A stretch of DNA of 64,000 nucleotides from Amphiscolops sp. MND2022 (taxonomy: Eukaryota). Under the pieces are notes generated by a model. The model was not told where the DNA came from and searched no databases. It saw only the letters and a list, made by a program, of their open reading frames with translations. Of this stretch, positions 1 through 24,105 are shown in pieces. Both the position numbers and the translations under genes were made by a program. Where the stretch lies: the NCBI GenBank assembly GCA_964187785.1, contig OZ076413.1, positions 65,038,001 through 65,102,000 of the forward strand, in the 5' to 3' direction. Positions within the stretch are counted from its first letter, which is position 1, and each line of letters starts with the position of its first letter.

Positions 1-58
1 AACACGAAAAGAACTGGAGCTTCTAGTAACAACCAAGAAAACAAACCCCCTGCTAGGT

Positions 59-2425
59 TTGGATTGGATGAAAAAATTGGGAATAACGTTGGAGACTGGT
101 ACGACCGTCCCACAAATACATCGAATAAAAGAAGACACAGATGTAACAAAATTAAAAACAAAATTCAAAAAGCTGTTCAATGAAAACCATACAGTAAACG
201 GGCTAGAAGTGAAAATACAACTGAAAGAAGATGCCAAATTGATACAACAGAAGGGAAGACCCATACCGATACATTTGCAACAATCGGTGGAAAAAGAAAT
301 AGAAAAGTTAATAAAACAAGGCCACATTGAAAAGGCCAACAATATTGACGAAAATTGCTTCGTGAGCCCAGCAGTCATCACGGTAAAGAAAGATAAATCC
401 GTAAAAATTGCGTTAGATTCAAGAAAGCTAAACGAAATAACCGTGAAACGAAAAGCTCAAATGCCAAACATGGAAGAGCTAATTTCGAGAATATCGAGAA
501 AAATAGCAGACGGTCCAGCAGATGAAATCTGGATTTCCAAATTCGATTTAGACTATGCCTACGGTCAGCTCATACTTTCAAAATCAGCCAGAAACTTGTG
601 CATATTCGCGGTAACCGGAGGAAACTTCACCGGTTACTACCGCTTCCTAAAAGGATTTTACGGGTTAGCGGATATACCGACGATATTCCAAGAAAAGATC
701 GACCAGACACTGGAAAACAAACATCCAGCATGGCTAGATGATATCATCGCGGTAACGAAAGGATCCAAAGAAGAACACATGAAAGAATTAATTGACGTCC
801 TAACCAAACTCGAAAACGCTGGATACAGACTGAGTGAGACAAAACCCGAATTTTTCAAAACAGAAATTGAATGGATCGGTCACCGGATAGATCAAGCCGG
901 AATCCGACCGTTACAAGATAAACTACTGGCTATAAAAGAATTGAAACAACCGAACAACGAAAAGGAATTAAAATCCTTTTTGGGAGCCATCCAGTATTTG
1001 TCAAAATATATTGACAACCTTTCCGCCCAAACCGATAGTCTGAGACAGTTGTTGAAAAAAAATACCAAATGGCTCTGGACGAAAGAACATACACGGGCTT
1101 TCGAAAATTTAAAACAAAAGATCACGGAAATACCGTGTCTAGCACATTACAACTCCGATTATCCAAACGTGATAACAACCGACGCGAGCACAAAAGGCCT
1201 AGGGGCAACCTTATGGCAAGAACAACCGAACGGAACACTAAAACCCATTGGTTTTGCAAGTCGCTTCCTATCAGACACAGAAAAAAAATACGCCATCAAT
1301 GAACTCGAACTACTGGCAGTAGTTTGGGGCCTAGAACATTTCCGTCTATACATTTATGGTAAACCTATTAAACTCTTGACGGATCACCAGGCATTAGAAC
1401 CATTAATTAAACGAAATCGCTCCAATAAAACATATAGCGCACGCTTAACACGGTGGTTGGACCGGTTAGCACATTTCACGATCAACGTAAACCATATAGC
1501 AGGCAAACACTTAGCACTCACGGATTATCTCAGCAGAAATCCGGTATTACCACCACAAGCGGACGATACGTACGACGAAGAATACGTAATCTACAATATC
1601 ATTCCACACTACAGCTTCATCTCCAAATACGGTTGCCTTAGCAACCATGCGAGCCAATCAGAAAACGGTACCGAGATAAGTGAACGCAAATCGAACAACG
1701 AGCCATCGACAAACGACACGCGTGAACAAACTGCCATTGATTGCCTTAACAGCGCCGTACACACACGCTCAAAGCCAAACAAATTAAACAACTTAAAGCA
1801 TACCACACTAAAAATGGATGCTAAAACGATCGAAAACATCGAAGCAAGATTTAATTCCGCTGAAATAACCGAGCTAACGACTCGGTGGAAAGAAATTGTC
1901 AAACCCGGAATTTACCGCATGACCGGGGGGAGATGGAAACGCTACCATGAACCTAAATTCCTTCGCAACGAGAGGAAAGTCATAGAGGAACGACTACAAC
2001 AACTTACCAGTAATCGACAACCAGAAGACCTTCGACAAATTATCGGACCGCAACACAAAGGGGGCTATCAACCACAAACCGGTCACTCCGAGCAATGGAC
2101 AGTGGACCCATATTGGGACATGGACCGACCAACCCCAGTTCAACCGGACAAACCTGGCCCATCCTCCGCACCAATCCCGATGGAAGAAGGTGAGATTGAC
2201 TCGAAAACGGACCAAGACCCTTCGGTCCTAGAGGTGCCAGCAATAAATTGGGCACGATACGTCGGGGTAAAAAGTGTCCAGTATGTAAAGATGGGACGCG
2301 CACCAAGAGTCGCAGCAGAAGAGCGAAATGAATGGAATCTCGAACACGCAGTGCGGGAGACAGAAAAGAACTTCTCCACGGATTTGCAGCTATTGATGAG
2401 ATCACAAACGACCCCAGCTTGCTAA
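59..2425 (+). CDS. Pol: reverse transcriptase + RNase H + long spacer
   Basis: RT motifs LDSRKLN, DLDYAYGQ, WLDD and LKSFLG. RNase H motifs TDASTKGLGATLWQ, ELELLAVVWG, TDHQAL and DYLSR. Confidence 0.92.
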   Translation: MDWMKKLGITLETGTTVPQIHRIKEDTDVTKLKTKFKKLFNENHTVNGLEVKIQLKEDAKLIQQKGRPIPIHLQQSVEKEIEKLIKQGHIEKANNIDENCFVSPAVITVKKDKSVKIALDSRKLNEITVKRKAQMPNMEELISRISRKIADGPADEIWISKFDLDYAYGQLILSKSARNLCIFAVTGGNFTGYYRFLKGFYGLADIPTIFQEKIDQTLENKHPAWLDDIIAVTKGSKEEHMKELIDVLTKLENAGYRLSETKPEFFKTEIEWIGHRIDQAGIRPLQDKLLAIKELKQPNNEKELKSFLGAIQYLSKYIDNLSAQTDSLRQLLKKNTKWLWTKEHTRAFENLKQKITEIPCLAHYNSDYPNVITTDASTKGLGATLWQEQPNGTLKPIGFASRFLSDTEKKYAINELELLAVVWGLEHFRLYIYGKPIKLLTDHQALEPLIKRNRSNKTYSARLTRWLDRLAHFTINVNHIAGKHLALTDYLSRNPVLPPQADDTYDEEYVIYNIIPHYSFISKYGCLSNHASQSENGTEISERKSNNEPSTNDTREQTAIDCLNSAVHTRSKPNKLNNLKHTTLKMDAKTIENIEARFNSAEITELTTRWKEIVKPGIYRMTGGRWKRYHEPKFLRNERKVIEERLQQLTSNRQPEDLRQIIGPQHKGGYQPQTGHSEQWTVDPYWDMDRPTPVQPDKPGPSSAPIPMEEGEIDSKTDQDPSVLEVPAINWARYVGVKSVQYVKMGRAPRVAAEERNEWNLEHAVRETEKNFSTDLQLLMRSQTTPAC

Positions 2426-4376
2426 AAACCCTGGTATGTCTCGAAAGACAACAGCACGAAATGATACCGGATGAGTATCAAACGGTCAGAAGAAAACTAT
2501 CCAGCCGGTTCGGTCTTGTTTTCATGGAAGACAGAATTATAGTACCAAAAAACCTCCGAACCACAGTCATCAGCCTTTTGCACAAAGGACATCTAGCCAT
2601 CAATAAGATGACTCTGGCGGCTCGACACTTCTGGTGGCCGAAGATGACAGAAGCCATACAGAAAAATGTGAAACTTGCATCCCCTGCAAAATGTCCGGTA
2701 AGAGCATAAAACCTAACATACCCAGCACGGAAAAAAATAACCTACCCCCGGTGAATAGTCCGAACGAAGAAATCCAATTGGATTTCATCGGACCAATCAC
2801 GGACAATAACCGTCGATTTTATATATTACTATCCATTGACCGGTACAGTAAATGGCCGGCAGCCAGTTTCTGCAAACACACCGACGGGGAAACGGCGGTA
2901 AAATTCCTTGAACAATATATTCAACTGAACGGTATACCAAAGACAATTAGAACCGATAAGGCGACTGCGTTTACGGGCCGCACTTTCCGCAATTTCTGCA
3001 AAAAAACACTACATTAAACTGATCTACGGAACACCGTACATCCACACCCCCACAGGCTTAGTAGAAAGAGGGGTCTAACGAACATTAAGGCCGGAGAACG
3101 ATTCGGAAAAGCTCTAGACTTGTCATTAGACGTGATGAGAAAAACACCTCACACGAAACTAAAGAAGTCCGCATTCGAACTACATTACGGTCGAAAACCA
3201 AACACGGAAATCTCTAATCTGTTAAGCTTAGATAACTTGAAAAATCTAACAAAGAATTCCATTTCAGGGAAACCAGATATCTTACAGGTAGATTCATTCA
3301 GCGGAGTTGGCGGTGTCTCCGACCAGCTACCGATGAAGACAAGAAAAAGCGATAAAGGAGTTAGTAACCACCCTTTCCTTTTCTTAGAAAAAAAACATCA
3401 CAAAACAAAGTTCGAAAGTGCATATACAGATAAACCGAATATAGCTATTTCGGAAACGAACCATACCGTAACAACGCCAAACGGAAGAATAATACACAAG
3501 AAATCTATTAGTAAACCCATCTGTAATTTTAACCAGGAATGCAACAACAACAGAGGAACTGGGCCGAGAGGGCCAGACGGCCGGTTTACAAGATCACCAT
3601 CAAAACCGAAGAGGGCATACGTGATCGAATCAGACACCGAGACACCGCTACCAGAGATCAGCAGCCCAATCACCACGGACCAACCGGACAACGCCACGGT
3701 GAGAAACGGTACGTATGGCAGAGGCAGACCAGTGAAATTAATACGAGACCGGAGAAACTCAAGCCCCCACCAATCCCCACCAGGAGGGACGGGCAGCACT
3801 GGCCCACTTACCATCATCGCAGCCAACATGACAGACACGGAGATCAACCGTGCTATCGAAGACGCTAGACAAGCGAATGATGAACTTTTTATCAGAGATG
3901 ATAATGGTAAGGTGTTTAAAAATCTGACTTCTTTTCCTAAAACGGGGGAAGAGAACAACTTTGAAAATTCTGAATTAGACTTGATCAGTAATCTGAGCTC
4001 TAGCACTGAATTAGAAGCAGATATTAAACACGAAGAAGAAAAAACAGTACGCAGATCAAAAAAACTAACAAAAACCAACCCAATTGTTAGATATAATAAC
4101 CCGGTATGTCATGATTACAGGAAACACCGTAGAAAGGCTGAACCTGAACCAAATGGAAACGGAACCAAGCAACCTCAACTAGTCCATACAACGGACAGCA
4201 AACTGACGTCACGGACAAACACTCACCGTGACAACCACACAAGCGAGGATCGGTCATCCGTCCATAAACAACTGGACCATTGGAGGAACTACCGCCATAC
4301 AGTAGAAGAACAGAAACCCATTGGCCGAACATCAGCCAATAGTGAGGGGGGAAATGTAGAGAGTACAGACAATTAA
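2332..4376 (+). pseudogene. Integrase in three frameshifted pieces (Zn-finger, DDE core, long C-terminal extension)
   Basis: HKGH..HFWWP..CETCIPC (HHCC), IQLDFIGP and RTDK occur in ORFs 2332-2709, 2634-3017 and 3120-4376. Frames break at ~2400, ~2660 and ~3005. Confidence 0.88.
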
Positions 4377-4545
4377 CTTAATTAGTCTATAAACTGTCTA
4401 CTACACTTGTAATTGATGTTCTTTTATTTAAATACCTGCCACTTAAGCGCAGATGATCTACTATCAGAAAGCTTGTATAGTAAGCTAGAAAACAATTGAG
4501 TTTTGTACTGAGATACTTCTTTAACCATAAAGCTAGATTACAACA
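4355..4545 (+). repeat. 3' LTR of element A (191 bp)
   Basis: TG...CA termini and an adjacent PPT; ends resemble the LTR ends of element B. Confidence 0.8.
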
Positions 4546-4886
4546 GCGAACAAATTTCGGCTTTCCGTTTAAACTTTGAAAAAATCTGAGTTCTATTTGT
4601 AAAATACGGCAGTATCTTTAAGTAAAAAGAACGATAGCAACATACCAGCTAAGTACCTCAATAAATTTTCCTAAAATTCAATAAAATGGAGCATTCTTTG
4701 GTCTCTCGGTAACTGAAACTTTTAAGCATGGTTCGTCACACCTTTCTCGACTTTTCCCTCTTGTAGGCTCTGAAAACTAAATACTGATCCTATGATGCTT
4801 GAACGCTGATGACTTAAAATCTATTCATATACCTATCAATACCTATTCGCATTTGCATGTCTTGTATTACCATTCATGTTAATAAT

Positions 4887-5130
4887 TCATCCCTTGCTGT
4901 AAATGAAGCCCCCTGTTACCATTTGCCCGATGCTGATTCCAATGGAGAGCCAGAAACTGACTGTGCTCAAAACATACAACCTCACTTCTGTTTCATCTAC
5001 AGAACCTTGCTTCGAGGCCGCTTTCTCACCAATCAGAAAACTCCCAGTGTACGAAGCGGGCACACTCAATCCAATCAGTATCAACGCGGTGTATAAAACC
5101 ATAAGGTGCCAAGTAAAAATAAGAGAGTTC
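4887..5130 (-). CDS. SLC18B1-like MFS transporter, exon with TM10-TM11 (boundaries uncertain)
   Basis: Reads LIFTWHLMVLYTALILIGLSVPASYTGSF...SFWLSIGISIGQMVTGGFIY. No phase-compatible AG acceptor was found, and an in-frame TGA follows SKG. Confidence 0.7.
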
Positions 5131-5489
5131 AATTTTGATTTGCCCTCAACAAAAACAGCGAACTAATTTAGAACAAAGGCAAGAAAAAAAATGCCATTAT
5201 AGAACGCTGTATCCATATTTGAATGATCTATGATCTAGTTTCAGATCTGTAGAGACTTCTCAGTTCACAACCTTTCAAGGCCCTTCGTTAGACAATTTGA
5301 TTTTCTTTTTCTCAGAGGCGTATTAGCAGAATATACGATAAATATCTCAGTGCCACTGCGCCTCATGTTTCGTTATCAGTAATGTGGCGTCCGGAAGAGC
5401 ATGGCAAATAGGGAACATTGTATCACGTGTTCAATGCTAAGATTATAGAATGATGTGTGCTAACTCTGATAGATTACTATTTTACTGTA

Positions 5490-5965
5490 CGTAACTTATT
5501 AGTCGGCGCTTCATGAAGTGAAACGCGACTATACTAGTGACTCGTTTTTTTTCGATCCACACGAACTGGCCAAAATCGTTCTACAAAAGTTCTACGAAAT
5601 TTTATGGTGTCAAATTGAACCAATCGGCCTAGCGAACAGAATCAAAAAGCTTTTTCCTTTTTTTCCTCGTAACATACAGTACCGTGCGAGACTAAAGAGT
5701 CCCTCCTTTCAGTTTTTTGGCATTGTGCGACTCTTTTTCGAAAATTTTCCCCCAAATGGTCCCTTCAATTTTTTGATGTTTTGCAACAAAGGATGTTTAA
5801 AAATCCGAAAGGGCGCGCCATGTCGATCGTTTGGGTTTTTCGAAATGGTTTCGAAACTCTTTTTGTGAGTTTGATACTTTGAGTTTTTTGCCACTTTCAT
5901 GTCTTTTTGCTATTTTTGAGCCTTAGATATGGCGCCGACTTGTGCCGTTCCCGGCTGTTTTTTTC
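5490..5965 (-). mobile_element. Copy of the same subTIR repeat family
   Basis: AGTCGGCGCT at 5501 and GGCGCCGACT at 5931, with shared internal GGGAC..TTT and GTGCC(A/G)AAAAA motifs. Confidence 0.6.
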
Positions 5966-6049
5966 CAAATAGTGTGTAAATCCTATGAAGCAAAACATTC
6001 ATAAAGTTTTCGATAGCCGTTTGTTTGTTACGTTGAACTCTACGTGTAC

Positions 6050-6406
6050 CTTGCAGGTGGATACAGTTGCGGCAGGAAGAGAAGGAAGTATCCTACTGAG
6101 CCAGTCAGCAATGATAGCAGGTATATTTTGCCACAGAACCCCAAATCAATCAGATAGCCAAACACAAGACTGGCAACAGTTGCCGTGGCAAAAGCTGCGA
6201 AGAAAAATTCCCCGTTACTCTCTGAGTCATAGCCGTAAGCATCAAGTAAGTAAGGCCCGAGCGCCACGCTTGTGAAACCTACTGTGGAATACACTGTGAT
6301 CAAAGGAAGTGCTGCTAACACGACGTTGGGTTTGAAAACATGCCAAAGCACTGAAACCCCAACTTTTCCTTTCTTTTTATCAACCATTTTATACGATGAT
6401 ACAGCC
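6050..6406 (-). CDS. SLC18B1-like MFS transporter, loop plus TM7-TM9
   Basis: Reads FKPNVVLAALPLITVYSTVGFTSVALGPYLLDAYG...LVFGYLID. Donor AAG|GTACAC at 6050/6049. Confidence 0.8.
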
Positions 6407-6415
6407 CTAATTATA

Positions 6416-6796
6416 CAGGGTCTTTCAGAAAGTATGTGTCAACTTTAATTTCAAATATCTCAAAAACTACTACTCAGAACGTAACGATATTTCAACAGAT
6501 TTTGAACAATATATGTAAGTTTTCTTTTCGATACATTAAAAGTTAATTCATCCACGTTAGGTGCTGGAAATGACCTCCATTCTTATCATTATCTTCACGC
6601 AGCTGTGATCGCTTCCCAATATTGAATATTGAAAATTCACTTTCCACTCAACAACAAAAATGAGTGGAAGAAAAAAACATGAATCAGAATTTACCATATT
6701 TTTCTCAAAAACCTTAAAAAACATTTTTGTTGAATTCGATCATTGTCTCACAATTTGAAGATAATTTTGACACCACATAATTTCTGAAAGACCCTG
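6416..6796. mobile_element. Tc1/mariner-type MITE (381 bp)
   Basis: 16-bp perfect TIR CAGGGTCTTTCAGAAA, with TA duplicated at 6414-15 and 6797-98; no coding capacity. Confidence 0.92.
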
Positions 6797-7051
6797 TAGG
6801 ATCCACTCTTTTCCGGGACGATGATACAATTCTCCCAGGAATGGCTAAGATGCAAATGATTGCAAGAAACGCTTCGAAACAACCAGCTACGTTGAAAGGT
6901 GTTGAGAAGCCCCTCCAGGAGAAAAGTACGTTGCCCACTATTGGGCCCAGCATTTGCCCGGCTCCGTAGGCAGTTTCGATCAACCCCACAATCAGTCCTT
7001 CGTTGCTGGGGTAGAAAGAGGTAATGACCGAGAAGCCGGTGCCCCACGCTC
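6793..7051 (-). CDS. SLC18B1-like MFS transporter, TM4-TM6
   Basis: GLIETAYGAGQMLGPIVGNVLFSWRGFSTPF matches the MFS motif-C region of SLC18B1-type proteins. Acceptor TTTTTCAG| at 7052. Confidence 0.85.
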
Positions 7052-7090
7052 CTGAAAAACATGGACGTTGTCTCTGAGTTTGATTATCAC

Positions 7091-10000
7091 TGTAAAGGCT
7101 GATTCTAGTAGCTAAGGCGTTCGAACCGTCGGCCTGTCCCTGGGATAATTTTAACATGCAAAAAATTGTAAAGCTCCCGAAAACTCTACAAATCCGTGAT
7201 GAAAACTGAATATTTCAACTTCTAAAACACTTACAACTTGCTTTTAAGAAGTCAATTTTCCGTTCTCATATGGTTATACAACATCTCAGGTACATCGACT
7301 AATAGAGTAAACAATATAGAAGTAAATATTTATGCGTAAATATGAAGTTATGAGAGTAAATCCGCTGATTTACAACAAGTAACTACACTTTCGTGATCAG
7401 TAAATACACTATCTTGGGCACTTTCTGCTTATCTAAGTAGGCTAATATTGGCTACAAATACTCAAATATGTTCTCACAACACGATCACAAACAAATATGA
7501 GGGCTAAAGTGGGTTAAACAGGAAATGGAGGGCAATATTTGCGAGAAAAGTGATATATTGATGGAAAAGTCCAAAAAACACCCATAAAAACTTTTTTTGA
7601 AAAAAAGTTGCTTTGATTTCCAGTTTTTTGTGCTAAATCGGTAGTTTGGCTCAAATAATTGGGTTCACCGCTATTTTGGGGTTGGTTCTTTCATTGGGGT
7701 CGGAGTTATGACACTGCAAAGTCACCCAATTTGAGGTCTTCTTTCTGTCCTGCATTTCAGGCCTTTTCATCGCCGGCCCTGTGTTTCTCTTGGGGAGGAA
7801 CACACCCAATGTCGTCCAACACACGGGACAACTTGACTGTAGGTCGAGAAAGAACTCCAGATTGGGTTAGGATGTCACAAGATCGAATATTGCTATCATT
7901 CCCAAAATGGCATCTTTTGACTCTATCAAGGCGGTAAAAACCTCGTTTTTCACGATGGTCGATAATCCACACCAGGTCGTTTTCTTTCAATTGCGGACCT
8001 TCCTTGTACCATTTCTGGCGAATATTGTGCACCGGAAGATACTCTTTCAACCATCTTGCCCAAATCTTGTCCATGTGAGCCTGAGCGACCCGGAACATTT
8101 TCCTGTGATTTTGGTACTTTTGCGCATCTGGCAAATATGGATACTCGGCCGGCCCAATAGAAAATGATGAGGTGTCAAAGCCTCCATGTCGGAAGGATCA
8201 TTAGAGTTAGGCGTTAGTGAGCGAGAATTTAGCAGTTGCTCAGTGAGACAAAGAATCGTAGCTAAAAGCTCGTCAGTAAGTCTCTGACCATTCAAAACGT
8301 GGTATATGGCCTGTTTGCAAGTCTTCACCATTCTCTCCCAAGAACCTCCGAAATGTGGCGCTGCAGCAGAGTTGAATTTCCAAACTATCTTCTTTTGACG
8401 AAGTTTTTCTTGGAGATCGTTATTTTGGCACATTGATGCAAACTGCTTCAGCTAGTTGTTCGTACCAACGAAGTTTGTACCATTATCGCTCCAAATTGTA
8501 GTTGGGTGACCTCTTCTGGCAATGAATCGTATAACAGCACTCAGACAGGAGTCAGTATCTAGCGAATACACCATTTCAAGGTAGAGAAGGTCAGCCATGA
8601 TTGGGGTTTGGACAACGGCACTGTATTTCCTACATGGAACGCAGCGACTTTTGATGTTCCGCAAGGCGTTTCTGAGGCCCAATATCCAGAATTTCTGTTG
8701 CAATCCATGTCGCATACTCTCAACACCTTGATGATAATTGTCCAAATGACAATTCAGCAACATCAGTCGTGTTGCAGGATGTTTGGATGGCAGAAGAATT
8801 GGGTGTTTAGTATCGAATTCGAAATCAGCTTTTGATAAACGTCCACGTGCTCTCATAATACCCTGATTGTTGATAAACGGGCAAAGTTGTGCAATGTTTG
8901 ATTTAGAAGATAACTCCTTTCCATTGACTAGGGTATCATATTCAGTCGCAAAAGATTCCTTTTGAATCAATTTGAATATGATTCGCTCCGCATAGTGACA
9001 TTCGTCCAATGAAATCACTCCTCTATTTTGATTGCGTCGTCTCCAGCGCAATATGTAGCAAATTGTGTGAATTAATTTAGTCCAAGAACTGAATCGTTCC
9101 CATTGTATCTCAAGTGGCTTGTTTGGCAATAGAGTAACCACTTGAGACGTTTCTGAAGTGTCCTCAACAATAGTACAGGCAGCAATAGTTTTTGGCCAGT
9201 GAGCTTCGTTCTCACTCAGCCACGCCGGCCCGTTTAGCCACACACTCGACGCAATTTCATTGGCTCGCATTCCTCGCGTGCCAAGGTCTGCTGGATTTTG
9301 TGCGCCAGAGATATGATTCCATTCACCCAGCTTGGTATTTTCCAAAATTTCACCAATACGATTTGCAACAAAAATTTGCTGCTTCTTTTCAAATGCATTC
9401 AACCATTGTATTACTGTTGATGAATCACTCCACATGAAAACTTGATTTATGGTGAAATCGTGTTCTTCTATGATGGATACCTTTATCCGTGAAGCATGAA
9501 GAGCTGCTTGATGCTCCAGTTTTGGAATTGTAGTAGTTTTGATAGGAGCCACTCTTGTTTTCCCCATTACGAAAGAAACTTTAACTTTGTCATCAATCTC
9601 AAATCTCAAGTAGGCGACGACACAAAGTCCCATTTCTGATGCATCGGCAAACACATGTAATTGTACATTACTGCCACGCTGCCAGCCATAATGTCGGTTT
9701 ATTGAGCGTTTCTTCAGGGCTGGAATTTCTTGTGACCAATCGAGATATTGTTTTGCAACATCTTGCGGAATTTCTTCATCCCAAGATTTCAAAGCTTTCT
9801 GCCAACTAAGTCGTAAAATAAGACGAATTCTGATTGTGAAGGGTGAAGCCAGTCCCAATGGATCAAAGATGGAGGATGCCACGGACAGAACTACTCTGTG
9901 AGTGATTATGGTATGCTCTTTGCCTGCGAAGCCACGACACAATTTGAGGTCGTCCGAGATGAGATTCCAATCCAAACAGAAAGCAGTAACACTCTCCACA

Positions 10001-13000
10001 TCACTGTCCTTCTCGCACAATTCTTTCACATTTGATTGCCATTTAGAGAGCTTGAAACCGCCTTTATGCAAGAGAGATATCAGGTTCTGTTTCACAGATT
10101 CAGCTTCCTGGATGTTTTCCGCAGAATACAAGAAGTCGTCCATATAGAAATTTCGCTTCACAATTCTAGAAGCGACTGGGAATTCTTTTTCATTGTCTGT
10201 GGCAGTACGTTGCAAAGCATAATTTGCACATGTTGGCGAGTCTTTGGCTCCAAATATATGCCGGGTGTATTCATAAGTGGATATGTCGTCTGATTGATTT
10301 TCTCGCCAAACGAAACGAAGGCATTTAGCATCGTCAGGAGGGACTTGTACCTGCAAGAACATAGCTTCAATGTCTGCGCTCATGCCGAACGGTTTCTCCC
10401 GGAACCGGAAGATGATCCCCACAAGATTCTGTAATAAATCTGGGCCAATGAAGAGACTTTTGTTCAATGAATGTCCTTCGAATTCGCTAGCCGCATTACA
10501 GACGCGCCTCACTTTTCCAGGTTTGTTCGGGTTGATTACAGGGTGATGGGGTAAATACCACTGAGGTTCGTTTCTAGTCTCTTGAAGCTCGGCTGTTTCA
10601 AGTATTCGAATATAACCCGAATCTTTATCCGTCTTGATTGTATCTGAATACGCATCTTTAAGTTCTGGGTTCTTGGCCAGTCGATTTTCGAGTGACAAGA
10701 ACTGTTTTACGGCACTACGATAATTGTTCGGAAGACTGGAATGGGGGGAATTCCACAACATTCCCACGGTGTACCTGCCATTTTCACAGTGCGTTGTCTT
10801 TTCCAAAGTTTCAAGTGCTTCAACATCTGATCTGGATCGCCCGTCCACTTTCACTCGTGAACCATAACTTTCGTTGTCCCACCATGTCTTGATTTGTTCG
10901 TTCAAGTCGAAATCTGCAGGTTGATGAACCGAATTATGACATGATGTCAATGAGGACACGATCTTTTTTGGCAATGGTCCACTGACTGTCCAACCCAAAG
11001 AACATCGAACAGCCCAAGGCTCGTCTGGCTGTCCTCGTTGATATTCTAAGGGCCGAGTCAATGAGAAGCAATCTGTTCCAAGGATAACTCCGACGACTTT
11101 CAGATTGAAATTGTTCGATGGAACTTTGGTCAGTTGAGGGTACTGACACTGCATTTTTCGAATATCGTAAAAACTCTCGCCAATGACAAGCTTTTGATGA
11201 ATAGCCATCGGGACATTTTCGTTTCCATAGTCCTTCGAATGAATGGTGACGTTAACAATCTCACTGTCATGACACTCAGTACCATTTATTCCACTGACAG
11301 TTAGACTACGCTTGACTCCTTGCAGGTTAAGTTGATCTGCTGCCGTTTAATCAATCCATGACAGACTAGATCCACTATCAACTAACGCAAGGAGTTTCAC
11401 CCTGTTCCCATTGTTTGATAGCTCCACTTTGTACACAGGTAGAATGCCAAACGTGTTCAAACTTACGCTTGCATGAGTCTCCACAATCTCCGTTGACGTT
11501 GTGTTAGGGATTTTGGTCTCTTCTGGTCGGTGTAGTAATCTGTTGTGACGCCTTTTGCAGCCGTCGATTCCACATTCTTTCATCTTGCAATCCTTCACAG
11601 CGTGTCCACCACGGAAACATAGGAAGCACAATTTGTTCTCCTTCACCTTTTTGTATCTGTCTATAGAAGGCAGTTTCTTGAAGGCATCACAAGCCCATAA
11701 TCCATGGGTATTGCCGCAGACAACACATTTATTTGGACTTTTTGGATTAGAATTAAATGAGGACAACCCAGTTTCGTTGGCAGCTGCGGACATGGATGAC
11801 CCTGTTGTTTTTGTTCGATCAGCCGATGTGGACTGCTTCTTGTCGTTGCTTTGCCTGAATTGAACAAGCAGTTTATCATGAACGAATGCAATGTCGTTCA
11901 ACCACTCACTAAATTTACTGAAATTTGCAGTTTGGTATTTTTGTCCCTTTGCAAAGAACAACCATTTCGTTTTCAGCTCTGGAGGTAGTTTTCTTACAGC
12001 GCTGTTCAACACAGACTATGAGCTAAGATCACCAGTAAAGCCGTACTGATTTATTACACTAACGCATGTCGTTATGAGTTGAGCATATTTGATAATGGCT
12101 GCTGAGTCGTGAGATTTGATGAAAGGGTACGTGTGGATAAGTTTCATTTGAGCATTAACCACTGTCTGGGGTCGACCGAAGTTGCGGACTAACGTGTCCC
12201 AGGCGGTGTGATATAATGCCCCAGAGTAACCAAGACCAGCTATTGCGGCTTTGGCTTTGCCTTTCACCAGCGTTTTTAAATGGCTCATTTTCGCATTGTC
12301 GTCGATTGGCGCATTGTGAATAACTGCATTAAATAGACTGGACCATTCGGGCCACTCCAGAGGATCACCTGCAAATTCGGTCATCTTCAATTTCGGTAGA
12401 CTGGATGCTTGAACTGTCCATTGGGGCAGGACAGGTTGTTGAAAGGGCAATGAATCGAGTTGTGAGACCCTGTTGGGCACTTTGCAATTCACATTGAGAT
12501 GTCGTTTCAGTGAGAATGTTCCTGATTTTGAACGACTTTGGCTTCCATCACCTCGGTCACTCACCCTTCCGCCTTTGCGGTTGGTAGAAGGATCCTTTTG
12601 CTCAATTACTTTCAGCGGCTTTCCTCTACAAGTTCGTGAAGCCACTGGATCGCTTGAGATAACAGTGTTTCCTTTTGCAGTCTGCACAACATTCTGCAAA
12701 TTTTGCTTTTGAATATCCACAACGTCACTGTTTTGATCTAACCAGCTCTTGATGTCGCTGTTCTTATCGGCATCAATTGATATCGACATCAGACTGGGAC
12801 TAACAGTTGACCCATTGCAAGAGCCTTCTGCTTCTTCAATTTGAAGTTTCATTTCCTGCATCTTTAGGGAGGTCTGATTCCGTAAATCAGCCAACTCTGT
12901 TTCAGCTTGCATTTCTTCGAGTTTCATTTCCATCTCCAGTTGTCGCTGCTTGCGTTTCAGCTCTAATTCTCTTTCTTTTTTTCTCAATCGCCATTCGCGA

Positions 13001-15074
13001 CTCTTGCTCCAGCAGTTTGGCTCGACTTTCAAGTCGCCGACGTTCACTGAGTCGTGAAGATCGAGAACCGGTGTTGGAATGTTGATACTTCCAAGGCTTA
13101 CTGCCAGCACTCTTCATGGTCGATGGAAAATTACTGGTAGATGGCTTCAGCTGCTGACTCACGTGTGCCGGAGCTTCGTATTTCGTAGAGCTTTCCTCGT
13201 ATTTACTTGACTCGTCTCGAGAAATGGTGTCATTAAAACTCTTCAGTAATTTCAAGCTCTGATCCATTTTCTCGACAGCACTTTTCTTGCGTTTACTCTG
13301 ATCTGTTTCGGGATTAGTCGAGATATTGTGGGTTTCCGAACGTTCTTCGGCTATCGTGGCATCTTCTGCTGCAAGGTTTTCTGATGTGGTGTTGGTATCC
13401 TTGCTATCTGGATCTACATAGCCGATCCATTAAATTGTTGCTTTCTGAAGTTCTCTCTCGACTTCAGCTAGAATGGCTTCCTTTGGTGCAAAGAACTCGC
13501 GATTGCCAAAATGAAGATTCATCAGAGTTCGTTGCTCCTTCAGAGTTTTGTCCATTTCGTCTTTCATCTCTCGAACCTTTGGTAAAGCTGATTTGACCTT
13601 AGTTGATCTAGCGCCCTGTGCAATCAATGAATCCGTCTTGACTATTTCATCTTGAGTCTTGACACGGGCGTCGTTAAATTGATCTGATAACTTACAGTAA
13701 CGTAGAAAATGTCCTTTATCCTTCAAATTAGAAAGACCTGTTTCACATCCTTTCAGTTTGCTAAACATTGTTGAGCATTCTTTGTAAAGTTGCTCAAGCC
13801 CACTCGTTTGACAACGCAAGACTTTGCGACGCTCTGACTGATACTTGTCTTTGAGCAGGTGAATGCAACTATCGCATTCGTTATTTATTCCTTCAATGGA
13901 TTTGCAATATTCTTGATAAAGACTGCCCAATTCGTATATACTGGGTTCGTAATCTTTTCCTTTAAATTTCAGTTCCTCGAACTTCGAAGATATCTGTGCT
14001 ATTGTTTCAATTGTTTTAGCAAAGCGCACTTCGTGCTCTCTCCATTCTGCAGCAGTGGATGAGTTCTTCAAGGCATCCGAAAATAACAACACCTGTGTTG
14101 TTCCGCCTTTCTTCATTGTCATTACCTTCGGGTCGGTTAGGTCAAATTTCGCCATCCTTGTAGAGTAACTTCTGCTATATTGCCTGCTATGTAGTAATTT
14201 GGTCAACCCGATGGACAATGAATCAGGTCCCCTGTGACGTGAATACAATATCCAGTTAAATAGGAATTTTGCTCTTCTTCAAGATTTGAGCAAACCAGTT
14301 GGGTATCTGCAAATCTAACAAAGCTGAGAAAAGAAGAACAGAAGTCAAAGATAGTGAAATATAACGCAACCTTTTCCCGGGTCGCGGCACCAAAATGTAA
14401 AGGCTGATTCTAGTAGGTAAGGCGTTCGAACCGTCGGCCTGTCCCTGGGATAATTTTAACATGCAAAAAATTGTAAAGTTCCCGAAAACTCTACAAATCC
14501 GTGATGAAAACTGAATATTTCAACTTCTAAAACACTTACAACTTGCTTTTAAGAAGTCAATTTTCCGTTCTCATATGGTTATACAACATCTCAGGTACAT
14601 CGACTAATAGAGTAAACAATATAGAAGTAAATATTTATGCGTAAATATGAAGTTATGAGAGTAAATCCGCTGATTTACAACAAGTAACTACACTTTCGTG
14701 ATCAGTAAATACACTATCTTGGGCACTTTCTGCCTATCTAAGTAGGCTAATATTGGCTACAAATACTCAAATATGTTCTCACAACACGATCACAAACAAA
14801 TATGAGGGCTAAAGTGGGTTAAACAGGAAATGGAGGGCAATATTTGCGAGAAAAGTGATATATTGATGGAAAAGTCCAAAAACCCCCCATAAAAACTTTT
14901 TTTGAAAAAAAGTTGCTTTGATTTCCAGTTTTTTGTGCTAAATCGGTAGTTTGGCTCAAATAATTGGGTTCACCGCTATTTTGGGGTTGGTTCTTTCATT
15001 GGGGTCGGAGTTATGACACTGCAAAGTCACCCAATTTGAGGTCTTCTTTCTGTCCTGCATTTCAGGCCTTTTCA
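7091..15074 (-). mobile_element. BEL/Pao LTR retrotransposon, full length but defective, in an intron of the MFS gene
   Basis: 679-bp LTRs at 7091-7769 and 14396-15074 differ at ~5 positions. TSD ATCAC (7086-90, 15075-79). PBS TGGTGCCGCGACCCGGGA (14375-14392, tRNA-Phe-like). Pao-type pol ends GGGCCGGCGA|TG. Confidence 0.96.
7757..14248 (-). pseudogene. BEL/Pao gag-pol with stops, frameshifts and an integrase deletion
   Basis: DUF1759-like gag (FAGDPLEWPEW), three Cys-His knuckles, protease LVDSGS, RT YMDD, Pao RNase H (LHVFADAS..PKLE), integrase SDNGTNF and DUF5641-like tail (LTPHHFLLG, W..W.KEYL). Confidence 0.92.
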
Positions 15075-17090
15075 ATCACAGAAGTGATAGAATGAAAACT
15101 AGTTTCAAACAAAAGAGTGTCCGGCTGCTCGGTGCTTTAATCGGAGTAGTGAACAAATAGCAGGATTCATTATTTGAGCTTGTTTTCGTAAAATCTTTCA
15201 CTGTAAAGAAAGATAATTAAAAAATAATTTTTCGTTTGGACTAGTTTGCCTAGTTTAACACAAAAATTAAAACTCACCGTAATTGTTCCAATGTATAGCC
15301 TTTGAAATAAAAAACACCAGTCAAAAGTGTAGGTTAGTCACTGTAAACACAGCGAGAGTAAGACTGCCTGATAATTAATCCTTTGTGCAACCACAACTTG
15401 TGTTGAGTTACATGAGGTATCTGGGTAAAATGATTTACTTTACTGCCACTTTCTTCGAGCAGCAGATCAACCAAAGGCAGCCTGAGAACTAGCATAAGGT
15501 AGTCAATTAATGCATATTCTGGAATCGAATTTCCATTTCAACACACAAAACGGAAAGTCTTATACCAATTGCTTACGTTTGACATTTTGATTTCTCCATA
15601 ATTTTCCCGAAATAAAGCTCCATTGTCCGAAAATTAGGGGAAACAACAAAATTGACTTGTGTTCTTGACCTTCCAAACAAACAACAATTTTCTTTTTTCT
15701 TCTTGATTTCTAGGCCCCTACGTTACAGGTAACATTACGTGTGTATTTTTGTCACATTACGACGCCAATCGGGGAAAAACGGTGACTGCAACAAATCTGT
15801 TGTAGTCTTATGTGGATTCTTGAACTGCATTATAACACATGCGTTTCAAGAATTGACAAAAGTGGAGTGAAATTTTTTTCTGGATTCTTGCACAGGCAGA
15901 AATTCAACTCACTTAGTAATGTAACTGCATGCGCAACTCCACCCGTGTCGCTATTTTACCTCAAGCATGATGACAAAAGTTTTTCGACCTGAAAATTTCA
16001 GGTATTTCTCATTCAATCCTTGCTGAGTTTCTCACAAAAGTATGCAGGTATCTCTCATAGTAATTTTTTACCTGAGGTTTTCAACGCAAAATTGCATGCG
16101 TTGGCTCAAGCTATTTTAACAAGGATCTTTTGGTTTTTGATCGAGTGTTCTTAAGCGTCCCATGGCATTACAACCCATTGACATTCTTGATACAAAATTC
16201 TCGAAAACTTATGTTAGAAAAACTAACTATTTTTTCGCACACTTCATATTGTTCCATGGGCATCTCTGACTATGATAATCCTCTTCCGCACAATCAATCA
16301 CGATTATGGTTTCATTTAAGTTTGGTTCATTTTGGTACGCTGGTTTTACAGGTTACCTAAACTGCGTCATTTCTGAAGGTCGGAGAGGAAAAACTCCTGT
16401 TTCTCAGTTAATATCATAATTATCTGAATATATTGGCTCCATGCTTGTATATCAGTGTTGACTAGCCAGGGTTCGATCGACTGTGATGTGCTATTTTCAC
16501 CTCAACTTCAGTGCCAACCAAAGTTGTTATCTAAAATCTCATTACATTGATGTGATGCTTCTAGTTCTGTTGCACTCATGTCCCTACTATCTGGAGAAGG
16601 ACTACTTGCTTCCTTCAAAAAGTGTTTTTTATGTCCTAGCACCTTTTCCCACAAATTACTGCCTTGCATGACATTCTATTCACAGAAAACAACGTTAGGA
16701 CTACATGACATCCAAAATAATATAAATCAAGTAAGAAACACGAATTCCTAGTAACGCGCATATTAAGTCTACAACCCCTTACTCGTTTCCTTATAAAAAG
16801 CACCTAACACCCTTCTGATAGCTGAGACTTGTTAAGACTGTTTCTGTCACTTCGTCCCAAACTTGTGACAAGACCAAAGCGGTCAACACAAAGAAAGAAC
16901 CTGAAGTTCATGTGTTTCTACTTCAAAAAAATTCGTTAGACCAAAACTCATTTCAAATTCACTTGAGATTGGGTATTTGTTTGACAGAAGCTTGAATTTT
17001 ACCGCCAATAGCTGGGGTGATAGGGGCTTTCAAATTTCACTTCACTGGATAGTGGCCAATGAGGAAAAGATCCGAAAAAAAACAACGAGC

Positions 17091-17266
17091 CTGCACTGAA
17101 GATGCCGATGCCGAGTCGAGCGAGGATGCTGAGAGTGAAGAAGGGCCAGACTCCGGGTACAAAGACCAGCAAGGCGAAGGCACACGACATGAGTCCGGCA
17201 CAGAAAGCACTGGCTATGAAGATGAAGTTCTGGTTCTCAGCACTGCCCATGGCCAGCACCAGGATA
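17091..17266 (-). CDS. SLC18B1-like MFS transporter, TM2 end to TM4 start
   Basis: Reads ILVLAMGSAENQNFIFIASAFCAGLMSCAFALLVFVPGVWPFFTLSILARLGIGIFSA. Acceptor GCGCAG|; the in-frame join to 7051 requires a GC donor at 17090. Confidence 0.8.
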
Positions 17267-18002
17267 CTGCGCAGCCAATCAGGAATTATTCATTAATTGA
17301 ATAAATATTTTATTAATTATTGAAATAATTAATCAATCAAATGATTATCCCAATTTAATTTCAAAGTGACAATTTAGGATCTAGATATGAACGTTGTTTA
17401 CATATATTTCTCCCTGAAAAGTCATGCATTTTTGATTAGGAAATCAAAAGCTTCAATTTTGGAGTGACAAAAAAAGTTATTTTTCAACATAATCACAGTG
17501 AAAATGTTGAAAAATGTTTTGTTCAAACGATAAACTATCCTAATCGACTTTAACTTTATGTTATCGATAAAGATTTCACTTTTAATTGGGCCAGTTTGAA
17601 AAACTTTTTCGAGGATTGACTTCATAAATTTGATGGTGGGGGAAACATAACAGAGCTATTGAAAAGATTAAAAGTGGCTAATCTCTTAGATATGAGACAA
17701 AGTCAACTTGTTTATCATGATCAGAATGAAACACCAAAAGACCAAATATCAACGCGCAATATATCTTTGGATATACATTTGAAAAAAAAGTGTCAAAAAT
17801 TTATGTCAGAAAACAATTGTATATACGAAATCGAATGAAAATGAGGAAAATTAGATCAACCGGTAGTTTCGGGAGTTTTAGAACCCATCATAGACTATCC
17901 CAGAGCTGTTGGTTTAAACAAAAATTTTGGAGACTTTTGGTAGATTTGACCCTGATCTAGGCCAAATCTTCTTTTTATAGGTGAAATGTTTAATTGTTAA
18001 TT

Positions 18003-21000
18003 TATTGTAATCTGCTTGCATAGCTGATATGAAAACAATATTTAAAATAACAATGTTTTCTGTAACTCAAAACGTATCATAATGATAGTGAGCTATATCT
18101 ATAGACCTAACTACTTGTTAGTCAACAAGACCTAAAATGGCAACGGATTGTTTATCAACAGTTTTAATGATGTCTGTTGCTCTACCATTTCCACCTCTGC
18201 AATTGGATGGGAAGTATCCAATGGGGTTACGTTGCCGTCCAGATTGCTGTTTTGTGGTCGGTATGCCGTCCGCGTCCTGTTGATGATGTATCCGGATTTC
18301 CGTGATCAGCATGGCGAGCTTCAAAGGAGTGGTTCGTCTTGTAGTATGAGCGGTTTACTGGTTTTCTTCGCAGTCCCGCTCCAGCATTTCTTCCGTTGTC
18401 TCCAGTAGTGGTGACATGTTCAGCCGTTTTGCGGTGTTTCCTGTAATCAGTTTGGTTAATAGGATGATTTAGCCTAACAATTGGGTTCGTTTTCGTTGGG
18501 CGTTTTGACCGGCGTAGGTTAGTTTCTTCTAAGTTTTCTATTTCTTTTTCAATCTCGGTGCTAGAGCTAAGGTTGCTGGTTAGTTCTAAGTCTGACTCAA
18601 TTTTCATTTTAAAAGTCTTGTAGGTTACCTTACCGTTGGTGTCTTTAATGTGGAGGTCTTGTCTTGATTGTTGTTTGTCACTGACTATTTGCTCAATGTC
18701 GGAATCCGACATTTGATCAGCATTGATTGTTAGGGGACCCAGTTGTTTGGTTTTGCCATCTCCCGACCGTTTTTCTGGCGAAGTTGATTGTTCCTGGTTT
18801 CGGATGAGTTTGGGCCTTCCGCTGCCGAATATCCCAAACAATAGGGTGTCCGGCAATTCTGGGCAGGTGTCCATTGGATCGTCTTGTAATGGGATCGATC
18901 GGAAGTGGCCGGAGTCTTGTTTTCTTTGCGGGCAAATTTTCCGTCCGGTCCCCTTGGTCCGGTACCTCTGTTGGAGGGTTCCTGTTCAAAGGGTGTAATT
19001 GATTAGTTTACTGTTCACTGATTAGTTTACGGTGAATTATTCTATTATCAGCTGTATTTACGGTGTGATTTGTTCTCTTTACGGCTGTTTGTGGCTGGTC
19101 TGAATATGGACTTTCAAATTTGAGTTTTGTGTTTTCCGTTCGAGAATTCAAACGAATATTTACTAACTGTTTTTGTCGATATTCTCTTTTGTTTCATTGG
19201 CAGATGGTCGAAGCTACCGCCTTCTCCACTGAATGTGTAAAGCTGTAAGGTTTCTGGTTTTGCTGAAAAGGATTGGTTATTTGTTAGTTCTTTGATTTCG
19301 TTCAATTTTAACATGTTGCTCAATTCCGTGTTCGGTTCTCTACCGAAATGCAATTTAGATGCCGATTTATTTAAACTAGTGTTTGGGGTAGTTCATCTTA
19401 CTCCTAATGCTAGGTCGAGAGCTTTTCCGAAAGATTCTCCTGCTTTAATGTTAGTTAATAGGTTTTTCTTCGATGTTCTCACCCCACGCTCTTCTAAGCC
19501 GGTCGGGGTATGAATATACAGTGTTCCGTATATAATCGAAATGTAATTCTTTTTGCAAAATTTTCTAAAGAAGTGGCCCGTAAACGCCGACGATTTGTTG
19601 GTTCTAATTATTTTTGGTATTCCGTTCAACTAAATGTCTTGAAGGAAATTTACCGCAATTTTTTCCGTCTGTTGATTTACATAGACTGTACTTATTTACT
19701 GTACCTGTCCATAGAAAGTAAAATATAAAATCTACGGTTGTCTTCCGTGTTTGGTCCGATGAAATTTGGCCTTCTTCGGGTTGGTTGCGTTCTTCGGGGA
19801 TGTTGTCATATTGCTTTCTCTCCAAGCATACGTGGGTCTTTTGAAGTTTCGGATCGTTAGTTGTTTCCGTCATCAGTAGCTAAAGATCCGTTGCGATTTC
19901 GTTTTTGGTATCTCTGACAGTGTTTTTGTGGTCCCAGTTATTTTGCTCCATTGCCTGAATTCTTGGTGTGTGACCCATCTTGATATATTACACGCTCTTT
20001 ACTCCAAGATAGTTGGCCAGTTAATGGTTAGTACTTCCAGTACCGACGGTGCCAGTTCTGAGTTGCTCGAAATTTCTCCCTCCTCCATTTATGTTTCGTC
20101 CGGTGAATAGGAGGTAGTCGGACGTACTTGGGAAGTGCTTGGCCTCTTATCTTTTTGGGGGATGAATCCCCCTTCAAAGTTCCCTGCTTCTGTGAAGTAA
20201 TCAGTCTGTTGCTGGTTCGGAATTGGCCGTTTTCTAATTTCTACGGCCGTGCTTTCTAGTTTTCGGAACATTTCCGAAAGTCTTTCTTCAAATGTTCTTC
20301 TTCCGCCGCGAAGAGTTTTTGATTCGTGGTTTTTTCAACTTGCCATCTGATAGTCGGTAAACCCCCGGCTTAAAATTTTTCGTCATCTTTCAATTAAGTC
20401 GGTTGTTTTAGGAAAGAGTCGATTTTTTCAAGGCTGTCAATGGTTTTAGCGTCCATTGTTATCCGGTTAATTGTCGATTTGACACTGTTCGCGATCAATG
20501 CTACTAATGGCGTTTAGTTCACGCGCGTTGCCAGTTGACCGATATTTGTTTGCTTTTGTCAAGCTGATTAGTTTGTTCTCGAATTGTGACTGGTTGAAAT
20601 GGTTGCTAAGGCAATCGAATGTTGAAACAAATCCGTAGTGCGGTGCTATGCTGTTAATAACATACTCTTCTTCGTATGCATCATCGTTTTGCGCCGGTGC
20701 GATACGATTTCTACTCAAGTAATCCGTGAGCGCTAAGTGTTTTCCGGCGTTGTGGTTTACGTTTATCGTAAAATGTGCTAATCGGTCAAGCCAGCGTGTT
20801 AGGCGTGCGCTGTACGTTTTATTCGATCATTTGCGCTTCATTAGCGGTTCTAATGCTTGATGATCCGTCAGTAATTTGACGGGTTTTCCGTAAATGTACG
20901 AGCGGAAGTATTTTAACCGTCAGACTACCGCTAAGAATTCCAGCTCGTTGATTGCATAATGTTTCTCTGTATCCGATAGAAATCTGCTTGCAAAAGATTT

Positions 21001-23609: not shown

Positions 23610-23888
23610 TAATTACAGTCGGACCTCGATATAATGAATCATTGATACAATGTAACTCTCGTTAGAAAGCAATTCAAACAAAACAAAATTTCAAACCAAT
23701 CAAAACCAAGCAAACAAAAAAGGATTCGAAACAACGTACACTCCTCTTAACGTAATCATTGTAATACTCCTCAAGAGGTGCGGTAAACCGAGACCCGACT
23801 GTAGTTTATTACTTTATTTTGATTTCAAAACTTGATTCAATTTGCAATAAAGTTCTCCATTTTTTGCAAAACGAATCTACGATAATCC

Positions 23889-24105
23889 CTGGAAAATACT
23901 CGTGCCACGTATTGCGTGCCAGTGGCGAGTCCAGTTTTGGTCTGGTCCAGACCTTTCTTGTGGGCTTGTTCTGGGTAGAAGGGACCATTGAGACTCATTT
24001 GGAATCCCTCCGCAAAAAACACGATCACACACGCTGCCACTCTTGTCCAGAGTATCATCTTCTCACAACGTTTCATTTTGGATTCTTGACAAATTGCGAT
24101 TGCTT
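23889..24105 (-). CDS. SLC18B1-like MFS transporter, first coding exon (ATG at 24076)
   Basis: VFFAEGFQMSLNGPFYPEQAHKKGLDQTKTGLATG parallels the SLC18B1 TM1 'GPFFPKEAEKKG' pattern. Strong acceptor TTTCTTTCCTTTAG| at 24106. Confidence 0.8.

Follow-up and report, generated by a model that had tools for sequence, protein, structure and literature searches.

The window analyzed here, a stretch of 64,000 nucleotides from the Amphiscolops sp. MND2022 assembly (GCA_964187785.1, contig OZ076413.1, positions 65,038,001 to 65,102,000), carries on its minus strand a predicted SLC18-like transporter gene of the major facilitator superfamily (MFS). One coding exon of this gene is interrupted by an old, non-autonomous miniature inverted-repeat transposable element (MITE) of the Tc1/mariner type. 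Our analysis suggests that the gene has most likely been kept intact by selection with the MITE inside it, and that the MITE is most likely removed from the RNA, since the gene appears to have stayed functional despite an old transposon in its exon. In what follows the window gene is called W, a paralog from the same genome P, and the corresponding gene of another species O.

A MITE within a formerly continuous exon

Read in the direction of the gene, the MITE extends from 6796 to 6416 on the minus strand (381 nucleotides) and is flanked on both sides by a TA (6798-97 and 6415-14), the target-site duplication. Its terminal inverted repeats (TIRs), TA included, form two arms of 25 nucleotides each that are 96% complementary: the 5' arm at 6774-6798, which holds a candidate splice donor, and the 3' arm at 6414-6438, which holds an internal AG. 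The window contains just two exact copies of the terminal 16-mer CAGGGTCTTTCAGAAA, one per strand, where 0.06 occurrences are expected. The order along the minus strand is TCCCGGAAAAGAGTGGATCC, TA, the MITE from CAGGGTCTTTCAGAAATTATGTG to CATACTTTCTGAAAGACCCTG, TA and TAATTAGGGCTGTATCATCG, and the interior of the MITE contains no open reading frame (ORF) longer than 55 residues. A search of the window's own assembly (1.07 Gb) scored at least 45 matches to the MITE among 203 candidates, and TIR ends with two or fewer mismatches occur 105 times in this genome, compared with 0 times for the reversed control. The family copies are 366-420 bp long, most of them are TA-flanked, and they have the ends CAGGGTCTTTCAGAAATTATGTG...CACATAATTTCTGAAAGACCCTG in common; the 5' arm of the window copy matches the family TIR without a mismatch and the 3' arm with one. 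In all, the family comprises roughly 100-200 old copies, and 28 of them (this one and 27 others, from about 200 candidates) were examined closely.

Both flanks of the MITE are MFS_1 coding sequence according to Pfam, one scoring just under and the other under the whole-protein cut-off because both are fragments. The upstream piece is exon E4a (6793..7051, minus strand; TM4-TM6 of the transmembrane segments, TM; MFS_1 E 3e-8), which is 75% identical to the paralog; the downstream piece is exon E4b (6050..6406, minus strand; the end of the loop, TM7 and TM8), which is 64% identical to it. The nearest solved relatives of the transporter family are VMAT2/SLC18 chains, and the coding pieces of the gene align in order to intronless paralogs, which together suggest that the interrupted gene is an SLC18-like MFS transporter. 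P (locus L032, 92 kb away) has a single open frame of 299 residues across the homologous region. In O (P0002, on a contig of another assembly, and evidently from another species because it has no match in this genome) the same region is also one open frame, 70% identical. Both genes serve as empty sites, and since a TA duplication, TIRs, a multi-copy family and uninterrupted relatives are found together, the MITE is best described as a transposon that inserted into a previously uninterrupted exon and not as an ancestral intron.

The insertion point lies in the variable cytoplasmic loop between TM6 and TM7 (W RKRVDP^IIRAVSSYKMVDKKKGK, O RKGATS^IKKQSYKDMDKGKS). Removal of the MITE together with one TA gives ...RKRVDP-IIRAVSSYKM..., and its retention leads to a stop codon at 6716-6714 (6714..6716, minus strand; ORF 6714..7157). 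The first-pass annotation of this DNA had described a mariner MITE inside a coding exon, placed it in the central loop, proposed that its excision with one TA fuses two MFS ORFs, placed a stop at 6714 in the unspliced form and asked for an empty site in paralogs. Each of these statements agrees with what we find: the arithmetic of the fusion is right, the stop is where it was placed, and the exon is intact in L032 and P0002. A protein homology search with E4b for relatives with the same split gave no match in a search that covers proteins of 65-206 residues and from which records of this genome were possibly excluded. An exact look-up of the 115-residue ORF likewise gave no match.

Candidate splice sites and paired ends of the MITE

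Both ends of a candidate intron can be read directly from the sequence of the MITE and its flank. The 5' TIR carries a candidate donor GT (6791..6792, minus strand; CAGG|GTCTTT); no other GT near this end can be joined in phase to the downstream acceptors before the frame runs into a stop. One candidate acceptor is an AG in the host flank (6407..6408, minus strand; TATAATTAG|G) and the other an AG within the 3' TIR (6422..6423, minus strand; TTTCTGAAAG|ACCCTG). Joining GT 6792-91 to AG 6408-07 would cut after 6793 and resume at 6406, giving VDPTGAVSSYKM, in frame and one residue shorter than the intact loop; joining it to AG 6423-22 would give VDPTGPCIIRAVSSYKM, in frame with four additional residues. 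Both combinations are stop-free, and a branch-point-like TTGAC motif is found 14-32 nucleotides upstream of the two AGs. AG 6423-22 would compete with AG 6408-07, and we cannot choose between them.

The pair formed by GT 6792-91 and AG 6423-22 is wholly element-borne. It would leave behind a residue of 12 nucleotides (4 + 6 from the element and the 2 of one TA) that contains no stop in any frame and, given the symmetry of the TIRs, does not depend on the orientation of the element. The consensus TIR of the family has the same property (AGG|GT and TTTCTGAAAG|, with a 12-nucleotide residue), which is a property of sequence only. Direct reading also confirms the 386-nucleotide unit from GT 6792-91 to AG 6408-07 that had been put forward earlier as in frame and one residue shorter, and TIR symmetry, together with the AGG|GT of the consensus, bears out the related claim that the TIR supplies a donor in either orientation of insertion. 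A second in-phase GT, said to lie ~25 nucleotides further into the MITE, is indeed present, at a distance of 21 nucleotides (6771-70). With respect to variation at these sites, a haplotype single nucleotide polymorphism (SNP) at 6411 (a>t on the coding strand) betters the pyrimidine tract before AG 6408-07 and would change I to F if AG 6423-22 were used, and a SNP at 6789 (t>a) changes position +4 of the donor and breaks one base pair of the TIR.

Relative to the family consensus, defined as the majority of the 28 copies, this copy is changed at 1 of 46 positions in its TIR arms, compared with 44 substitutions at the 325 positions of the interior (one-sided Fisher test, 0.014; 0.0005 with gaps). 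No such contrast is seen in the other 27 copies, in which, when pooled, the arms diverge by 12.7% and the interior by 11.9%. The paired arms close the MITE into a hairpin in both the minimum-free-energy and the centroid folds (z = -4.55). Such conserved and pairable ends point to a possible role for them in this copy.

Age of the insertion and constraint on the gene

The window copy differs from the consensus by 45 substitutions in 371 aligned positions (12%; Kimura two-parameter distance 0.13), the family median being 9%, and the closest copy among those scored is at most 77% identical to it. The large majority of its internal differences (34 of 44) are private or common to only one or two copies, a pattern that looks like decay in place and not like a subfamily.

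The coding pieces of the gene were located exon by exon with P, O and the intronless paralogs as guides. All six, 1398 nucleotides in total, are open and in phase with the relatives, and they would encode about 470 residues, the normal size of an MFS transporter. In simulations, neutral substitution at the level of 12% leaves 1398 nucleotides free of stops in 0.4% of the trials (P 0.004); with frameshifts added at the MITE's own indel rate (4 events in 381 nucleotides), the joint P is <1e-4.

A search for sequencing runs at the locus returned four runs of one study, none of them recorded as RNA. Over 4600-7090 all four behave as DNA, with contigs of even depth across intron, MITE and exon. Run X1 matches the assembly, and runs X2-4 represent the other haplotype set, which is about 1-2% different. 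The MITE is present at the site in both sets, as each of the four runs has contigs that span 6416 and 6796. The lower word share of X2-4 (0.63) was considered as a possible MITE-free form and rejected, because it is due to SNPs and these runs also hold the MITE.

In exons E4a, E4b and E5, X1 and X2-4 differ at 12 coding positions, of which nine are synonymous and three are conservative replacements (R>K, V>M and M>V). E4a accounts for four synonymous and two conservative differences; E4b, downstream of the MITE, for four synonymous and no nonsynonymous ones; and E5 for one synonymous change and one M>V. Given a neutral synonymous fraction of 0.25-0.32, the probability of the 9:3 split is about 0.002. 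Because both haplotype sets carry the MITE, selection would have acted with the MITE in place, and the split provides indirect evidence that the gene has been under purifying selection after the insertion. Ka/Ks values against P and O cannot separate lasting constraint from death since the insertion, as synonymous sites are saturated in these comparisons (dS >1.3).

The MITE family elsewhere in the genome

The other copies were excised in silico, open frames were sought across the resulting junctions, and the best flanks were scanned against Pfam. In none of these 27 copies is the MITE bordered by coding sequence on both sides. The only one with adjoining coding sequence (L002, 1380-1901; G000:C1:19698853-19699374) lies 40 nucleotides downstream of a normal CCAG|GTATTT donor, in a pre-existing intron of another MFS gene that is SV2/sugar-transporter-like. 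With the median divergence at 9% and this copy at 12% from the consensus, near-identical copies indicative of recent proliferation were not found. The family appears to be small, old and mostly non-genic, and the introner-like character ascribed to it in the first-pass annotation is not upheld by copies that number roughly 100-200, are old, are exonic in 0 of 27 other cases and in one case lie in an intron that was already there.

Other exons and introns of the gene

The gene model (all features on the minus strand) begins with exon E1 (23889..24076), identified by alignment to relatives, which contains the start codon, TM1 and the FYPEQA motif. It is followed by a candidate lineage-specific intron, (d), at 17267..23888 (TCCAG|GGATTATCG...GCGCAG|T), where P and O are continuous. 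A GG start is the only one in phase with the AG, which would make this a GG-AG intron, and the junction restores ARVFSSILVL, to be compared with ARLVGSIVVL. Exon E3 (17091..17266), again placed by alignment to relatives, encodes TM2 and TM3. Between E3 and E4a lies a second candidate lineage-specific intron, (a), at 7052..17090 (GTGCAG|GCTCGTTG...TTTTTCAG|G, with a GCAG|GCTCG start), which would be GC-AG. P reads straight through this position, and joining 17091 to 7051 gives IFSAGAWGTG, compared with FFSAGVWGTG in the paralog.

Two repeats were noted within intron (a). A long terminal repeat (LTR) retrotransposon is nested at 7091-15074 on the minus strand; its LTRs of 679 bp are 99.3% identical, it has long pol-like ORFs (8452-11208 and others), and its end lies about 38 nucleotides upstream of the acceptor at 7053-52. 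The X2-4 contigs stop at 7031, short of this retrotransposon. At about 15755-15893 there is a 140-bp element with more than 500 candidate copies in the genome, 39 other scored copies of which are 97-100% identical, pointing to a SINE- or MITE-like burst of very young age.

Exons E4b and E5 (4893..5106; TM9-TM11; 62-65% identical to P and O) are separated by an older intron, (s), which is common to W, P and O and would be in phase in all three genes (W 5107-6049; L032 about 690-1500; L055 about 10719-15175). None of the three has a usable AG, and the intron is in phase in W, P and O only as GT...TG (or the equivalent GG...TT). A stem of 9-12 bp, AGAGTTCAA/TTGAACTCT, lies a few bases inside both ends; it is significant relative to shuffled sequences and has been kept across the three genes although synonymous sites are saturated. 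The segment at 5440-6027 within intron (s) is a very abundant repeat, with k-mer depths of 1e5-1e6 in all four DNA runs, compared with about 20-70 in the flanks.

Downstream of E5 is a third candidate lineage-specific intron, (c), of the GG-AG type (GCAAG|GGATGAATT...AATTCATCCCTGATTGCAG|A). Its 5' part occupies 1..4892 and it continues beyond the window to G000:C5:65035937 (L064:7937). Joining its ends restores IYSK-TNFNY, to be compared with IYNH-TNFNY, and its first nine bases pair with its 3' end in a 9-bp stem. The last exon, E6, lies 6.95 kb downstream and outside the window (L064:7936-7703); it is 54% identical to O (E 3e-18) and runs without interruption to a normal terminal stop. A match at 237-154 that resembles TM12 was considered as the last exon and rejected, as it is the antisense strand of a retroelement. 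Intron (c) also contains a pair of direct repeats of 193 bp, 100% identical, at 4353-4545 and G000:C5:65036509-65036701 (window -1492..-1300), which bracket about 6 kb of plus-strand retroelement sequence and resemble the LTRs of a retrotransposon nested in the intron; contigs of the X2-4 haplotype also contain the junction at 4545. A genome repeat search for a transposon origin of introns (a) and (c) found the 570-bp 3' part of (c) to be unique and, in (a), matched only the 140-bp element.

P has a further candidate intron (L056 about 9190-10087) of the form GCAG|GAACGGATTGTCTA...TAGACAATCCGTT...CTTCAG|, that is GA-AG, with a perfect end stem of 13 bp. At the same position O has a GT-AG intron (L055 about 9553-9994; GCAG|GTAAGA...ACACAG|) with no significant stem, and W has no intron there. 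We infer all junctions of introns (a), (c), (d) and (s), and those of the GA-AG intron of P, from DNA.

Explanations for the interrupted exon

In the explanation that we favor, an old copy of a small Tc1/mariner-type family would have landed at a TA within the coding exon for the TM6-TM7 loop, a poorly conserved part of the protein, the gene would have stayed functional, and the MITE, now a new intron, would be taken out of the pre-mRNA. Cutting would most likely occur at the TIR-borne GT 6792-91 and then at AG 6423-22 in the 3' TIR or AG 6408-07 in the host flank, and the 25-bp hairpin of the inverted ends would hold these weak splice sites together and would itself be part of the signal. We infer that the MITE is removed, at which sites this happens and that the hairpin contributes; for removal as a stem-closed GT-AG intron in particular, we put the chances at about even. 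The other introns of the gene and of its paralog, which combine non-canonical ends with significant end stems, provide a context for this explanation, and a precedent is the documented removal of DNA transposons with paired inverted ends from exons of animal mRNAs (PMC12779559).

Several points weigh against it. Measured against the canonical consensus, the donor AGG|GTCTTT is weak, as are both acceptors, and the gene model would require four other non-canonical candidate junctions. The only runs that hold the locus are the four DNA-contig runs of one study, so the removal of the MITE is deduced from DNA. The estimate of age assumes that the copy resembled the consensus when it landed; 10 of its 44 internal differences are common to three or more copies, and if it came from a rare subfamily in which only the TIRs were the same, the arguments from age and from TIR conservation would both be weakened. 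The selection test rests on 12 SNPs. In addition, the haplotypes diverge by about 4.5% at synonymous sites, compared with about 1.3% in the neighboring intron and MITE sequence (4600-7031), a 3-4x gap that is odd. One possibility is that divergent non-coding contigs were filtered out during unitig building; gene conversion from the paralog was rejected as the source of the synonymous excess, since the alternative alleles match the paralog at 2 of 9 sites. Finally, the nonsynonymous divergence of the W branch is about twice that of the paralog branch.

This last point would also be in keeping with a gene or allele that is dead or dying, in which the MITE is retained, the protein is truncated after TM6 at 6716-6714, and the open frames and the synonymous excess are leftovers or chance. 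A dead gene would likewise accord with the three further interruptions that have no counterpart in the relatives, two of which hold young retrotransposons, and with the non-canonical junctions that would be needed to remove them, and a close paralog, at a distance of 92 kb, could stand in for the gene. Against this alternative, not one of the six coding pieces has lost its open frame or its phase, the probability of remaining free of stops under neutral decay for the age of the MITE is 0.004 even with frameshifts uncounted, the last exon retains its similarity to the O protein up to a normal terminal stop, and the split of nine synonymous to three conservative differences between MITE-bearing haplotypes has a P of about 0.002. 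Taken together, the age, the intactness, the polymorphism and the conserved ends make a dead gene with a retained MITE improbable. Retention could also be reconciled with function if the gene produced two half-transporters, an N-terminal half (TM1-6) that stops within the MITE and a C-terminal half (TM7-12) that starts from the ATG at 6387-6385, with the halves then assembling. MFS halves that are expressed separately can assemble, the insertion is exactly in the inter-domain loop, and the ATG (MVDKKKGK...) follows 29 nucleotides after the MITE. It is unlikely, however, that translation would start internally on a eukaryotic mRNA that has an ORF of more than 200 codons upstream, promoter evidence inside the MITE, at which no search was aimed, did not come up, and the conservation of both TIR arms would be left unexplained. 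This alternative seems to us very remote.

A different route of removal is offered by SOS splicing, in which Tc1/mariner elements are excised from exons in C. elegans and human cells independently of the spliceosome, base-pairing of the inverted ends being both necessary and sufficient (Zhao et al., Nature 2025, PMC12779559). In that account the cut sites are seldom GU-AG, and gene function is rescued only where the insertion falls in a poorly conserved region. If a hairpin-triggered excision and ligation of this type (AKAP17A/CAAP1/RTCB) acted on the MITE, it would cut at several positions at or near the TIR ends, only some of the products would be in frame, and the loop would tolerate small indels. 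The insertion site is indeed a variable loop, and the TIR stem is intact at 24 of 25 bp and seemingly kept over all 46 nucleotides, which is more than splice motifs alone need. Other introns of the gene family start with GG, GA or GC, or end with TG, and have end stems, and RtcB is encoded in the genome. On the other hand, SOS splicing is imprecise and exonic insertions are purged over time (PMC12779559), whereas the insertion in W is old, the gene appears to be constrained, and a canonical in-frame GT-AG pair is available. The CAAP1 Pfam profile matched nothing in the genome, but its control likewise matched nothing. Moreover, intronic elements are not SOS-spliced in C. elegans, so that the likeness to the other introns of the gene is one of analogy. 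We hold an SOS-type mechanism for the MITE to be rather unlikely.

Relation to known systems

The case fits kinds of events that are already known, namely the removal of Tc1/mariner elements from exons, introners and MITE-derived introns. Like the substrates of SOS splicing, it involves a Tc1/mariner-type element with pairable inverted ends that lies in a coding exon where the protein is poorly conserved, and the gene is apparently functional. The insertions studied there are recent or engineered, whereas the one described here is old, is present in both haplotype sets and is known from DNA alone. When Tc1 was found to be removed from mutant pre-mRNAs of C. elegans, this was initially interpreted as cryptic splicing (Rushforth and Anderson 1996, as cited in PMC12779559). 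Most of the element is lost through cryptic sites within or close to its ends, and the changes left behind can be small and in frame, as they would be here. Ds and dSpm are also spliced from maize pre-mRNAs via cryptic sites in or near their ends. The alleles of these C. elegans and maize systems are laboratory or recent mutants, in contrast to a copy that is about 12% diverged in a gene that is probably under selection.

Introner elements are known from Micromonas, Aureococcus, dinoflagellates and others (Huff et al. 2016; Gozashti et al. 2022, 10.1101/2022.06.06.494994; review PMC11282704). Among animals, introners have been found in only two groups (Gozashti et al. 2022, 10.1101/2022.06.06.494994). 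Together with the MITE-derived introns of Fritillaria, they indicate that DNA transposons make introns on a genomic scale (10.1101/2022.06.06.494994; PMC11282704). The MITE in W resembles an introner in being a short non-autonomous TIR element with a target duplication in coding sequence that brings a splice site and could be removed in frame. It differs in that introners are present as many near-identical intronic copies in many genes, whereas its own family consists of roughly 100-200 old copies with none of the 27 examined being exonic.

In the tunicate Fritillaria borealis, MITE insertions became introns, most of which are AG-AC or AG-AT and are documented by RNA (Henriet et al. 2019, as summarized in PMC11282704; see also PMC13326754). 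The two cases have in common an animal lineage, introns that are MITE-born (here putatively) and ends other than GT/AG, represented in the present gene family by GG-AG, GA-AG, GC-AG and GT-TG candidates; they differ in that the introns described here are deduced from DNA and that the MITE could use plain GT-AG. The nonconventional introns of euglenids have ends that are paired via TIR-like sequences, non-canonical borders and, often, target-site repeats (PMC11282704). The holding together of intron ends by TIR-like pairing is the shared feature, although euglenids are a protist lineage with a specific pairing rule (+4..+6/-8..-6) and circular excision products.

What is new in the present case is an old Tc1/mariner-type example that is carried by both haplotype sets and in which the flanking exons as well as the hairpin bear signatures of selection. 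Clear cases of datable exonic DNA-transposon insertions that persist as introns of constrained animal genes are rare; for this one, the donor family, relatives with an empty site and two haplotypes that carry the MITE are all available. The locus bears on the origin of new introns and on whether hairpin-triggered excision leaves lasting genomic traces, and its neighboring non-canonical, stem-closed candidate introns make it a compact test bed for the splice-site rules of this lineage. We would tentatively suggest, as a speculation with more against it than for it, that in this animal lineage the pairing of intron ends rather than the terminal dinucleotides may be a main signal for removal, such that any exonic inverted-repeat transposon could be tolerated at once and later fixed as a stable intron. 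If this is true, a single gene would hold a Tc1/mariner-born intron, three new introns (GG-AG, GC-AG and GG-AG) and, in addition, an old GT-TG intron with an end stem conserved among paralogs and between species, and it would represent a natural counterpart, on an evolutionary scale, of SOS-like hairpin-triggered excision.

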